Assembly: GCA_907165135.1 (NCBI GenBank)
Contig: OU015569.1
Location: forward strand, 1,550,001-1,614,000
Reading direction: 5' to 3'
Length of the DNA: 64,000 nt
DNA from: Oikopleura dioica
Taxonomy: Eukaryota; Animalia; Chordata
The notes under the pieces are model-generated. The model did no database searches. It worked only from the letters and a program-made list of their open reading frames with translations, and was not told where the DNA came from. Positions 54,591 through 60,752 of this stretch are shown piece after piece (position 1 is the stretch's first letter; every line of letters starts with the position of its first letter). The translations under genes and the position numbers were made by a program.

Positions 54591-55329
54591 CAAACTTTCA
54601 ATTCTTTGGTCGCTAAAAATTTTTCTTCCTCGCATTTTTGCGAAGCCGATTTGCGGCTTACTTGTTAAAAAAAGCCGCTAAACCCTATCAAACCCTGAGT
54701 CAGGGCCTGACTCAGGTCTTCTGCGATGGTTGCCGACCCCATTTCATGACTATTTTATTCAGAGATGAAAATTGCTTTTCAGTAAGTTTTGAAAATTCAA
54801 AGAACTTAAGGTTCTTTTCTTATGCAAGCGAAGAATGCATTTCGAAATTGCATTGTTGACTAGGGATCAGTAGATTGAATGAGTAAACTCGTGAAAGCGC
54901 GGCTCGCTTGCGCCTCCGCCAAACAGCGCCGCCGATTCTTGAGCTATAAATGCGTGGATCAGGTGGGACAGGGGATCAACCATCGCCAGAGAAGACTTAT
55001 TAAAAGAGAACTTTTTATATTTTATAGGTAACCTTAGAGACTCGACGAATACTTGGACGCCTCTTTTTATTTGACAAATTTTTTTGCGCTTGAATTAATT
55101 TTAATAATTATTTTAACTTTCTCTAAAAAATAGGGTTTTTTTGAAGATAGAAAACACTCTGGCTAAAAATATTTTTAGTGTAAGTATTTTCAGTGATTTT
55201 TAGCTTTCTTGACTGATTTTTATAGTTAAAGATTTGGTTTGCAAAAATACTTTCTGGAATTAAAATTAATTAAAAAATGTAGTTAAAAAATAAGTAAAAT
55301 AAAAAATTGCAAATGTGAACCAAGCGAAG

Positions 55330-56379
55330 ATGAAAATAACCTTGTTTGCCATCTTTTCTGTAAATGCCCAAGAAGACTCAGAATCAGCATCTTCACCAGT
55401 TGTGCCGCGATTTCCAATCATCGCAGGTAAATTTCCCGAAAGCCAAGTTGCAGGAGTTCCTCAAAGTGACCTTTTAGGATCTCGACTATCGCGTAAATTC
55501 GTCGACTTTCGAAACATGTGGCGAGAGTATGGATACACTCAGCAGCAGCTCACAAGTGTAAGGCTTCTTTTTTTTAACAGTGTGACACCCTTATTTTTGA
55601 CCCTTATTGATACCCATATTCCTGATATAACGTTCTTTTTCTGATTCCCTCTCTTACCATTTTTGTAGCTATACGGTTACGGCTGCTACTGCCTGAACTT
55701 GGGCGGCAGTCCGATGAGCGGCCTTGGCGAGCTCAACGGATCGAAGCCAATGGACGAAATCGACCGAACTTGCTTCCACTGGACTCGGTGCAACCGCTGC
55801 GCTGCGATCGACTACGGCGAGCAGTGCAGGGCCGAGGACAAGAGCTACAACTTCGAGATCGACCCTGTTACCAAGGAAATCACTTGCAAAGGTAAACTGG
55901 CAAAACTATCCTCTCTCCTTGACACGGCGTTGGTTAGACAAAAAGAACAGCTGCAAATGGGCGATCTGCGAGTGCGACAAAGATCAGGTGATTTCGATGA
56001 AACAGTTCGTCGACCAAATGACTCCGGACAGCCCAATGCTCGCTCACAACGGATTCGATACGGAGGCACAGTGCCAGAAGAGAGAAGTTTCGAGGATGGA
56101 ATCAGGAATGGTTGCAAATTTATCGCTTTCGTGCATTTTCCTTTCAATTTTAAAAGAATTTTTCGTCGTTCTTTTTTCCGATTCTGCGGTCTTTGAGACT
56201 TCAAGACGGTTAAATCGACGACTATATGATTTTTTTAATTTAAAACTTTCAAATTCTCGACCAAAATTGAAGCGTCGCGAAAACAGTGCTGCGGCGAGTT
56301 CCCAAAGCGGCTACCATTCAACGAGAACCTGAAGCAATGCTGCGATGGAAAAGTCAAGAGCCACGGATCCTGCATCTAG
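55330..56379 (+). CDS. Secreted phospholipase-A2-fold protein lacking the catalytic His-Asp, with a galaxin-like Cys tail
   Basis: Signal peptide; YGYGCYCLNLGG; PMDEIDRTCFHWTRCNRC; CKWAICECDK; CCGEFPKRLPFNENLKQCCDGKV. TATAAA at ~54947. Confidence 0.75.
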
Positions 56380-57110: not shown

Positions 57111-57596
57111 ATGCTGCGGTGTAAACTTTGCAATTTTGAAGCTCCTAAGCAAGGAGCTAAATCGGGTGTAGGGCGGCCACGGTACAAATTTGTACCGCCG
57201 TTACAAATTTGTACCGCCGGTACAAAAATTTTTGTACCCCCGGTACAAGCCAAAAATAAAATTTGAGAAAAAGAGTGCGCTTCGCGCTAGAATTGAAGGA
57301 AACTCCTTCTTGGTATAGCTGAGGTGGAGTTCTGTCCAAAAATGAGCTTTATTTTGGGTAAAAATCGGTTTTTATTGTCAAAAAACTTATCATTTTTTGT
57401 ACCGCCGGTACAAAATTTGTACCCGCGGTACAAATTTCACTTTTGTACCGCGGCCGCCCGCCCCCCGCTAAATCACCGAATAAATATGTGCAATGGTTGA
57501 TGCGAAGGCATATCAGAGAAGAACACGCAGAGAGAGTACCACTAGCTTCCGTTGCTCAAGGGATTTTCTTCAACGAAAACATCATTTATCTAGAAG
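57111..57596 (+). pseudogene. Atypical C2H2 zinc-finger exon 1 (MITE-interrupted)
   Basis: Removing the MITE gives MLRCKLCNFEAPKQGAKSPNKYVQWLMRRHIREEH..FFNENIIYLEG|GTAAG. Confidence 0.75.
57164..57466. mobile_element. 303-bp MITE with TTGTACCGCCGGTACAA-type palindromic subrepeats, inside a zinc-finger exon
   Basis: Imperfect 15-bp TIR GGGTGTAGGGCGGCC / GGCCGCCCGCCCCCC; 8-bp TSD GCTAAATC (57156-57163, 57467-57474). Confidence 0.85.
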
Positions 57597-57711
57597 GTAA
57601 GTTCTAAATAAAAAGTTAGACAGTTTCTCATCTGATAAAAAATCAACTTGAATGGGGAGTTTTGCTTTGAGATGGTTCCATTCTGATTTTTGAACGTTTT
57701 TTTTTTGAAAA

Positions 57712-57883
57712 ATGTTGCGTTGTAAAATTTGCGCTTTTGAAGCCCCAAAGGTAATTGCAAAGCAAAAGCAGCGGGTAGAAGAGATTTTGAGGAAGCATAT
57801 ACGCTTGCAGCATAGTGATATATTCCCAGCTACTAACTCCTTTGCTCAGGGAAAATTCTTCGTCGAAAATATCATCTACGACG
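57712..57883 (+). CDS. Atypical C2H2 zinc-finger exon 2
   Basis: MLRCKIC-x21-HIRLQH..FFVENIIYDG|GTAAG. Confidence 0.7.
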
Positions 57884-58084
57884 GTAAGCTAAGATTTTTC
57901 TTGATTATTATTTTTGATCTTAACTTTTTAACCACTATTTTTGTCAATTTGAATGACAAAGAACCTGCTTCAAGCAAAATAGGAGACCAAATTGTGGCCG
58001 ATAAAAATCAACCCCGCTCCCATGAAAATCAGTTTTCCCAACCGGCACAAACGTTTTTCTTTGTATTACTATTTTCAAATTGAA

Positions 58085-60456
58085 ATGTTGAAATGCAAGT
58101 TATGCTCTTTCGAAACTCCCCTGAACAATATGAAAACGACTTACAATATAGAAAAGAAGATTCGGATACATCTTAGAGAACAGCATTCAAGTAGTATTCC
58201 AACAAAACCCGCCGAGATTGGATCCTTTTTTAAAAAGAATATTATTTATGCTAAAGGTGCGGGGATCCCCTTGTTTATAATAAGAGCCATAGAAAGCTTT
58301 TGATTGCATGTAGCTAAAATTTTTGTGGTTAAAATTGTCTTTTAGGCAACGAATCGGCGATAAGTCAAGTTCAGAAGTCAGCTCCAACGGAAGAGGTCCC
58401 GAAAAACGTTCAATTTGCGAAGCCTTCTGGTCTGCGAAAATCAACGAGAACCGTCAGCACAGGAGATGAGCCGATGACAAAAGGTAGAAGACTTTTTCTC
58501 AGAGGAAATTTAATAATTATTACGAAATTTCTCGCCCAGACCTCGGCGCAAGAAAGAAGACGGTCGATAAAGACACCATGATTCAATGCAAAATTTGCAC
58601 CTTCGTTGCACCCATAGTGACTGGAAGAGGACAAAGACCGGAAATATATGAAGCCAATGTTAGACGCCACATACGGGAGGTGCACGCTAAACTGCTCCCA
58701 AGAAGCAACAAAGATATTGGAATATTTTTAAGCAAGAATATCCGCTACTTACGAGGTATGTTTAATAAAATTCAAATATATTTATTTCTATTATAATAAA
58801 TACTAGCTAAATGTAGTGAATGACATGATACCTTGTTTTAGTAAAGAAATCTTAGTTCCGTAAAATTCATATTCTGAGAATTCAACTTTGAGTTCCCGCG
58901 ATCTGACAATTGGCCATTTTTAGGAGACGGGGCAGCCCACGCAGCTCCAGCGATATTGAGCCAGATAAAGAAAGAGCCCGAAATTACTATCGAGGAGCTA
59001 TCGCCTGAAGAGTCTTATCCTGAAGAGTTTTCAGAAGAAGAAGAGGACGAAGATGCTGAGCGAAGAATGAGCGCGATGGATACTGAAAACTGGGAAGAGA
59101 ATAAAGAGAACATGAGCGAAGAGTCAAGAGCGAGAGAGAATCATTGCGAAGAAACTGAAAGAACGAACGAAGGCAGTGCCAAAGAGCAACAGAAAGAAAA
59201 AGAGCAAGCAGCGGAGAATAAAGAAGAGGAAAGTGAAGAAGAGCGCTTGCGTGAAATGTCCCGACAGGTGGACATTTTCAGTGGCTACATGATCCAGTTG
59301 CCGCAGGAACGAGTCGGAAATGAAAAAATAGACAAAAAGCACCTTGGCAAATATGGCGATTACTCGCGTCTGATTCCTCTGGAGAATCAACAAGGAACAT
59401 TTGAAGAATGTCCACGAGGTAAGAGCTTTATCGTTGCCCAATTAATATGCTCAAAAAAGCCTCTGGCCAATAAAAAGCCTGGTAATTCCAGGCTGGAATT
59501 TTCTAACGAACATTATTATCAGGCAAAACCTAACGATTGTCTTTTTAGAGATGTTCGTTCTTCCCGATAGCAGCAGAAAATGGAAACCCGTCAATCTCTG
59601 CGATGAGGAGATCGGCGAGACAAAGTGTTTCCGCTACCTGACGCCTCATGGCAACATCTCCGATCCTTACTATGGCCGTCTTGTCTACCTGCACGACACT
59701 CCCTTCACCAAGCGCACGGTTCGCGACGCGGAGGTGCCAGACAACGAGCTCTTCTGGTACCTTTTTGCTACAAACATGATCCAAACATGTCAAAAGAAGA
59801 GTACATAAAGATGGAGAGAAAGTTTCACAAGACGATGGAGGCGGTTCAGACGCCGGAGCAACTCGCTGACATTGTTCGAAAATCACATCGCGAAGTTGAA
59901 GAGGAAGAGAATCGGACGCAAGGCACAAGTTCTTCGACCGGCGCCGACTCGCAGGTGCAGGCGGAAAAATCCAAGAAAAACGAGTTTTCTGACTTGGGTC
60001 TTGATATGAGCGATGAGGAGGAAGACGAGGGCATTGTTGAGGCAGCAAATAAAGACCCCTCGATTGATGATGACATGGAAAAGTGCCTGAAAGGACTGGA
60101 GCTGTCTGATGAGGAAGAAGACGAAGATGAAGAGGGAAGCGAGAATGTCGACGGCAAACAGGCGCGAAAAGAATGGATGAAAAAGCAGAAAGCGGATCTT
60201 ATCGAGAAGATCGCCAGAGCAATTCACAAGAATATCATGCTCACTAAAAGGGAGAAAGAGGTAAAGAGTTTTCTACGCGAAAAGAATCCGCTTGCTTACA
60301 TTTATATTATAGATCGATGATGAAATGGACAGGCTCATGCAAAATCGATCCGACGAGATCGAACGACGAATCGAGGAACGCTACACTTGCGGAACATGCG
60401 GAAAGATGCTCGATTCTGTTAAGGCAACCAGAGTTCCAAAACTAGCGAAATCGTGA
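58085..60456 (+). CDS. Zinc-finger gene: finger exon 3 (58085-58256), linker exon (58346-58483), finger exon 4 (58540-58755), acidic constant exons (58924 onward)
   Basis: The finger, linker and first constant exons join in phase 1 with GT-AG. One apparent missing T at 59762-59766 joins WYLF to CYKHDPN. Stop TGA at 60456. Confidence 0.65.
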
Positions 60457-60752
60457 TTTTAGTTTAGCTCTAAAGCTTTGTCTTGATTACTTGAAATCTT
60501 TTGAACTCTGAATCAGGGAGTTCCAGAAGCGAAACACGAGCATTTCTGCAAACTGGCCTCCAACATCTAGCTCCAGAAAGTCACAACAACATTCTCCACA
60601 ACATTTTTCTTCACACCAAAGCCCATTTTGGCGACTATTTCACTGTCACTCACTCCTCAATAAAATTGAGATCAATCAATCCTCTTTTTCTTCCTTTGTT
60701 ACATTTCTTGCATGAATCAACACAGATAGTTACAGTTCGCGCTCGTTTAAGA

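Follow-up and report, generated by a model that had tools for sequence, protein, structure and literature searches.

A probable cassette of alternative finger-like first exons in an orphan gene of Oikopleura dioica

We examined a 64,000-nt stretch of contig OU015569.1 (the window, to which all positions below refer) from the Okinawa assembly OKI2018_I69 of Oikopleura dioica, and found in it an array of four paralogous finger-like modules, M1 to M4, at a locus that protein look-up identifies as the gene Oidioi.mRNA.OKI2018_I69.XSR.g13694 (XSR.g13694 below). The region is eukaryotic in style, with short introns and GT-AG borders. This is probably one gene whose first coding exon has been duplicated in tandem, each mRNA taking one of M1, M2 and M3 together with the common exons, such that a variable N-terminal finger is set on a constant body. 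The fourth module, M4, is a constant internal exon and not a first exon. The initial annotation had proposed a diversification locus here, a description that is apt as regards alternative finger first exons on a shared body and overstated as regards extent: the choice is two- or three-way, M1 being broken by a transposon.

M2 (57712-57882), M3 (58085-58255) and M4 (58578-58754) translate as M-x2-C-K-[LI]-C-x21/21/23-H-x4-H...F..NI.Y, with pairwise identities of 36-43% and the invariant residues in common; M1, to which the same motif had been ascribed, fits it only once an inserted element is removed. All four modules close at phase-1 G|GT donors (57596, 57883, 58256 and 58755) that keep one base of the next codon, and the acceptors at 58346, 58540 and 58924, all of phase 1, give the remaining two bases; both sets of sites are as originally read. 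The three variable exons M1, M2 and M3 are all donor-phase compatible with a single acceptor, 58346. This opens common exon 2 (58346-58483, on the forward strand like every exon described here), a 138-nt linker exon that accepts all three first exons and is present in all three public isoforms. Common exon 3 (58540-58755, 216 nt) carries M4, occurs likewise in all public isoforms and is conserved in Tara contig L020. Both of these exons are symmetric (phase 1-1); they are followed by common exon 4 (58924-59418), in which an acidic tract is found and a conserved beta-rich region begins, and which is placed by its splice sites, the public isoforms and relatives. A profile of the modules was run, as had been suggested, on the organism's own genome (64.28 Mb in 19 scaffolds) and matched this locus only, with E-values of 1e-17 to 4e-30 for the main pieces and 0.012 for the 17-codon head of M1; since the profile finds only these places, the module array is not due to chance.

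No usable in-frame acceptor was found upstream of M1, M2 or M3, each of which starts at an ATG: every phase-1 AG meets stop codons before the module, and M2 has an in-frame TGA two codons 5′ of its ATG with no AG between. M1, M2 and M3 cannot be internal exons, and for want of a usable acceptor a linear four-finger transcript is ruled out, contrary to the possibility, raised at the outset, that one linear transcript is all there is. M4 has its own acceptor (58540), and its former start ATG is now an internal Met. The proposal that any finger could be spliced onto the shared body thus stands for M1, M2 and M3, which the public (hint-based) models join to 58346, and fails for M4, which is constant in every isoform.

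Three isoforms of XSR.g13694 are public. Isoform t1 (P0019, CAG5094596.1; 426 amino acids) begins with M3, an intact alternative first exon at 58085-58256, through the junction 58256 to 58346. Isoform t3 (P0015, CAG5094595.1; 426 amino acids) begins with M2, also intact (57712-57883; 57 codons plus 1 nt, with the phase-1 donor), through the junction 57883 to 58346. Isoform t2 (P0001, CAG5094594.1; 401 amino acids) begins with the half of M1 that follows the inserted element, from a Met at 57500, through the junction 57596 to 58346; its protein opens MRRHIREEH and then runs into exon 2. The three GenBank proteins are identical from exon 2 on, the exons for M4 and the acidic tract included, and none of the three isoforms contains more than one of M1, M2 and M3. 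Alternative isoforms in AUGUSTUS normally need conflicting hints, and to judge from that behaviour the trio probably reflects conflicting intron hints. The junctions are those of AUGUSTUS models, the assembly having been annotated with RNA-seq intron hints and transcript exon hints (PMC8008620). As the annotation totals 18,794 isoforms for 17,260 genes (PMC8008620), three isoforms in one gene are unusual. A limited literature search found no paper describing the first-exon cassette of XSR.g13694, the isoforms of which are already in GenBank.

Coding constraint was gauged against L016, an ENA metagenome contig from a wild relative that is 92% identical to the window. M1, M2 and M3 follow one another in L016 as they do here, and the ATGs, zinc ligands and G|GT donors are all kept. 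M2 and M3 are free of indels relative to L016, and the introns between carry indels: intron 2 is 91% identical with 14 gap columns, compared with 95-96% identity and zero gaps in the modules. The ratio of the proportions of nonsynonymous and synonymous differences (pN/pS) is 0.14 for M2 (three nonsynonymous, five synonymous), 0.24 for M3 (three and three) and 0.63 for M1 (12 and five). Small as these counts are, they point to purifying selection on M2 and M3 as coding sequence, and to relaxed or fast evolution of M1.

M1 is broken in this genome. Its frame from 57111 stops at 57266 after 51 codons. The 5′ half, with the ATG and CxxC (57111-57163, recognized by translation and by a match to profile positions 1-17), is separated from the 3′ half, with the HxxxxH helix, F..NIIY and the phase-1 G|GT donor (57475-57596, containing the t2 start ATG at 57500), by a 303-bp element at 57164-57466 to which no strand was assigned. 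The element ends in 26-nt terminal inverted repeats, with subterminal palindromes in addition, and is flanked by an 8-bp target-site duplication, GCTAAATC, at 57156-57163 and 57467-57474; once 311 nt (the element plus one copy of the duplication) are removed, M1 is in frame with a 22-residue spacer. Dispersed copies are found in the genome, more than 10 at 82-95% identity and at least seven of them near full length at 89-95%, and all six copies with both ends aligned have an 8-bp duplication of their own. By these sequence hallmarks (the 8-bp duplication, the inverted repeats, a short non-coding body and many copies) the insertion is a non-autonomous miniature inverted-repeat transposable element (MITE) of hAT type. 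In L016 the site is empty and M1 is an intact orthologous exon (L016:1281-1463). Splicing of the MITE as an intron was considered and rejected: the first AG after the element lies at 57506, the sole phase-compatible GT-AG pairing (57165|57166 to 57518|57519) removes the first His, and no GT-AG pairing was found that excises the MITE while keeping the M1 finger.

In sequence, the body of the protein shows tracts of basic and of acidic residues and a beta-rich region that is conserved; there is also a basic helix, and the C-terminus carries CxxC...H...C. The constant exons had been taken to run to 60456; they do belong to the gene, with the qualifications that a 1-nt frameshift interrupts them and that the stop probably lies elsewhere. 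Compared with Tara contig L020 (94% identity), the window lacks 1 nt of a T-run (about 59761-59766), which cuts the public model short at a stop at 59806-59808 and so at 426 amino acids. The L020 frame stays open here (FWYLF-CYKHDPN) for 256 residues; its open reading frame (ORF), P0024, is matched in the window by two frames. Past the shift, identity to L020 is 97.4%, without gaps, and pN/pS is 0.37; this region is still conserved as coding sequence from 59769 to 60260 and forms a single ORF in L017 and L021. Since the frame is intact in L020, L017 and L021, the exons up to 60456 belong to XSR.g13694. A homopolymer error of the assembly, or else a mutation of very recent date, probably accounts for the stop at 59808.

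Common exon 5 (59549-60260), with the conserved domain, the second acidic tract and the basic helix, is placed by L020/P0024, L017 and L021, and common exon 6 (60313-60423), with the C-terminal CxxC and candidate donors GT at 60418 or GC at 60424, is placed by relatives. The relatives P0025, P0026 and L017 end ...DSVEGVPKEAHE.IC..., and with this the window segment GVPEAKHEHFC...stop (60517-60570) aligns; by homology only, it would be a last exon that completes the C2HC knuckle. The gene therefore probably has one more intron (60418 or 60424 to 60516) and a stop at 60570 rather than at 60456. At the position of this intron L017 has none. The segment 60424-60456, with the stop that was first assigned to the gene, resembles a diverged local duplicate of the next segment (60517-60570).

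Pfam searches of every exon, of relatives of the public isoforms and of the sister-lineage 535-residue ORF gave nothing above threshold, and a PDB sequence search with the body gave no match. ESM Atlas leads for P0019 (DUF6570, Helitron) all scored below 0.85, with template modelling (TM) scores of at most 0.21, and were treated as noise. An AlphaFold2 (AF2) model of the body (P0026, seven sequences) had a predicted local distance difference test score (pLDDT) of 48.5, and the fold search with it was dominated by a long helix.

Across 11 aligned modules C4, C7, H29 and H34 are invariant, in a C-x2-4-C...H-x3-5-H pattern. The spacer from the second Cys to the first His is 21-24 residues in the O. 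dioica lineage, against 12 in the canonical finger, which upholds the long-loop finger noted at the start, and reaches about 35 in L019 and L023; the classical 12-residue C2H2 spacer with its conserved F and L is not seen in the modules. Pfam gave no match to the modules at threshold: the best, to members of the C2H2 clan, had E-values of 0.004-0.09 and about 13-14 bits against cut-offs of about 27, several C2H2 families matching weakly on the HxxxxH helix. A PDB sequence search with the module profile gave no match. The AF2 model of the module (11 sequences) has a pLDDT of 81 and shows a hairpin with the two Cys and a helix with the two His, then a second helix and a strand from NIIY. Its best structural neighbours are C2H2 fingers: AFV1p06, at Z 4.2 and a root-mean-square deviation of 1.7 over 40 residues, and, at Z 3.5, Kaiso; these matches are weak, short of the level that would make them safe. 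The module may thus be described, from its model, as a C2H2-like finger with putative zinc binding and a variable 21-35-residue spacer, extended by a further helix and strand. It resembles classical C2H2 fingers (Pfam zf-C2H2 clan) in its CxxC...HxxxxH ligands, in the modelled hairpin and helix and in its best structural neighbours, and differs from them in having a spacer of 21-35 rather than 12 residues and an extra helix and third strand (F..NIIY), and in falling below the Pfam thresholds. The finger is an undescribed, lineage-restricted family.

Among 1.84 billion proteins, matches to the module at E<=1e-10 came to eight representatives: one is the gene's own public model, and marine metagenomes, an NCBI assembly and a Logan run supplied the other seven. 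Word-index protein searches recovered the cluster of the gene itself, together with P0024 from Tara and two fragments from the sister lineage, and no homologue outside appendicularian-like sequences; a metagenome scan with the module alignment yielded no contig beyond those already found. The distant relatives (L017/L018/L022, L019, L023 and P0005) have a single module directly before a basic exon 2, the place occupied in XSR.g13694 by common exon 2. The contigs L017, L018 and L022 were independently assembled, and all start about 213-221 nt upstream of the module, as could happen if assembly had broken off at a repeat, which might consist of more module copies; the count of one module in that lineage covers only this short upstream stretch.

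L021, a metatranscriptome contig from a sister lineage, encodes a spliced 535-residue body with no M4 equivalent. The M4 exon is an insertion relative to this protein, which argues that M4 arose by lineage-specific copying and was taken up into the gene between exon 2 and the exon with the acidic tract. The M3 ATG is preceded at 25-50 nt by a GGCACAAMCG-like motif (58031-58060); the motif is common to the single-module relatives (L017:175-200, and upstream in L019 and L023), is absent 5′ of M1 and M2, and may be a 5′ untranslated or core-promoter element. In a tree of the modules M3 falls weakly with two single-module relatives and M1 falls with M2 (55% identity), the rest being unresolved. 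M3 is probably the ancestral first exon, as far as sequence comparison can tell, with M1 and M2 a younger pair and M4 presumably a copy of older date that came to serve as an internal exon.

Several points weigh against a working cassette of first exons. The distant relatives are single-module, and L019 lacks a second module in 2.9 kb upstream. The module at L021:1284-1460 (MKEIIFIATEK...) has lost both Cys and keeps the HxxxxH helix and NIIY; the zinc site is thus not universally retained, and the gene may be able to do without the finger. In this genome M1 is broken, and no more than half a finger would be encoded by its isoform. The three first-exon junctions are those of hint-based gene models, the annotation paper having no locus-level data, and no module-to-exon-2 junction was present among transcript-derived proteins of the O. 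dioica lineage in the protein collection searched. The pN/pS values rest on few substitutions, put at 3-8 per module. A genuine frameshift, as opposed to a fault of the assembly, could mean that the gene is in decay in this strain. For the protein, the zinc binding, the nuclear location and any target are predictions.

A rival account, which we consider unlikely, is that only M3 works as a first exon, M1 and M2 being relics, the annotated junctions low-level or noisy splicing, and functional variety nil. M3 does open isoform t1 and has the upstream motif common to single-module relatives, M1 is disrupted by the MITE and has the highest pN/pS of the three, and the distant relatives manage on one module. 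Yet M2 keeps its ATG, the four zinc ligands, all invariant residues and its donor, and at about 8% divergence it is free of indels, with a low pN/pS, between flanking introns that have them; M1, for its part, is intact in L016. The need of AUGUSTUS for conflicting hints likewise speaks against splicing noise. Much less probable is the alternative, put forward initially, that M1 and M2 are tandem mini-genes for single-finger proteins of about 60-120 residues ending in what are here called introns. Each has its own ATG, and M2 read past its donor is indeed open for 123 codons, to the stop at 58083 given in the initial annotation; however, the read-through tails are not conserved, as the gaps and lower identity of intron 2 in L016 attest, the G|GT donors are conserved there, and the public models splice M1 and M2 to exon 2. 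That all four fingers stand in series in a single linear mRNA, as their common orientation, 370-600-bp spacing and single donor phase might suggest, can practically be dismissed given the stops that lie between M2 or M3 and each phase-1 AG before them, the TGA before M2 and the want of any public isoform with two of M1, M2 and M3.

If M1, M2 and M3 are alternative first exons of one gene, each would start at its own ATG and be spliced from its phase-1 donor to 58346, and a mature mRNA would contain exactly one of them, followed by common exons for the linker, the internalized M4, the acidic tract, the beta-rich region, the second acidic tract, the basic helix and the C-terminal C2HC knuckle. 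Each protein would then have one variable N-terminal finger, one constant finger (M4) and the constant body. The protein is probably nuclear and would bind nucleic acid or chromatin, in which case a swap of the N-terminal finger would plausibly alter the binding target. Which first exon is used could depend on separate promoters or on alternative sites for spliced-leader trans-splicing. O. dioica uses both separate promoters and spliced-leader trans-splicing, and an AG(A) is found 17-55 nt upstream of each of the M1, M2 and M3 ATGs. A TCTAGA at 57589-57594, in the last codons of M1 and 118 nt before the M2 ATG, is conserved in L016; as TCTAGA occurs at chance frequency in the window, this is a candidate male promoter mark only. 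The same hexamer has been described as a core promoter element at male-specific internal promoters of O. dioica (PMC6389100).

A wider picture can be offered tentatively. In this chordate gene, the choice of first exon might exchange the N-terminal finger for nucleic-acid recognition, perhaps by way of alternative spliced-leader acceptors on a single primary transcript and not of separate promoters; isoforms particular to a stage or a sex would result, of a chromatin protein that is X-linked and lineage-restricted. The cassette may be so young that its birth (by duplication), capture (of M4) and death (of M1, by the MITE) are all visible among cryptic O. dioica species.

We also looked at the neighbours of the gene. 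A Notchless-like NLE/WD40 gene begins on the forward strand at about 60754, some 183 nt beyond the point where the finger gene is inferred to stop. In L021 that same gene (L021:13-1272) lies instead 12 nt upstream of the finger gene, reflecting a different gene order, a polycistronic RNA or a chimeric contig. On the other side, ORFs of an upstream gene at 55315-56200 (forward strand) have a signal-peptide-like start and a Cys-rich stretch, and end about 900 bp before M1.

XSR.g13694 shows on a small scale an architecture already known from other genes, and reveals no new mechanism. It resembles the clustered protocadherins and UGT1A in having tandem paralogous first coding exons with their own starts, no acceptors and donors of the same phase, joined to one common exon set. 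It differs from them in having three variable exons only, one of them broken, and in that the variable part is a 57-residue zinc finger and not an ectodomain or substrate-binding domain; moreover, spliced-leader trans-splicing could make the choice here, with per-exon promoters a possibility, and a fourth copy is now a constant internal exon. The insect BTB-zinc-finger genes lola, mod(mdg4), Broad and fruitless combine a constant body with alternative finger exons, and their isoforms are expected to differ in targets. Theirs, however, are 3′ exons for C-terminal fingers, numbering up to about 20-30, whereas those described here are 5′ first exons for N-terminal fingers; XSR.g13694, an appendicularian orphan, also lacks a BTB domain, and its finger family is unrelated. 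Within O. dioica, alternative first exons have been documented for the Fgf11/12/13/14 genes (PMC11733497), but those are short, poorly conserved and basic and are not tandem copies of a folded domain (PMC11733497).

The reach of the finding is limited by the gene being an uncharacterized orphan, by the small variety on offer and by the prior presence of the isoforms in GenBank. It does flag the public model as probably defective in two respects: a 1-nt indel cuts it short, and the last exon is missed. The cassette differs among related cryptic species, with a single module or three, and with a module that is broken or devoid of Cys in some. The O. dioica genome lets promoter choice and spliced-leader trans-splicing be separated experimentally. 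If the isoforms are real and differ in their targets, XSR.g13694 would be a compact chordate case of first-exon domain swapping in a DNA- or RNA-binding module.

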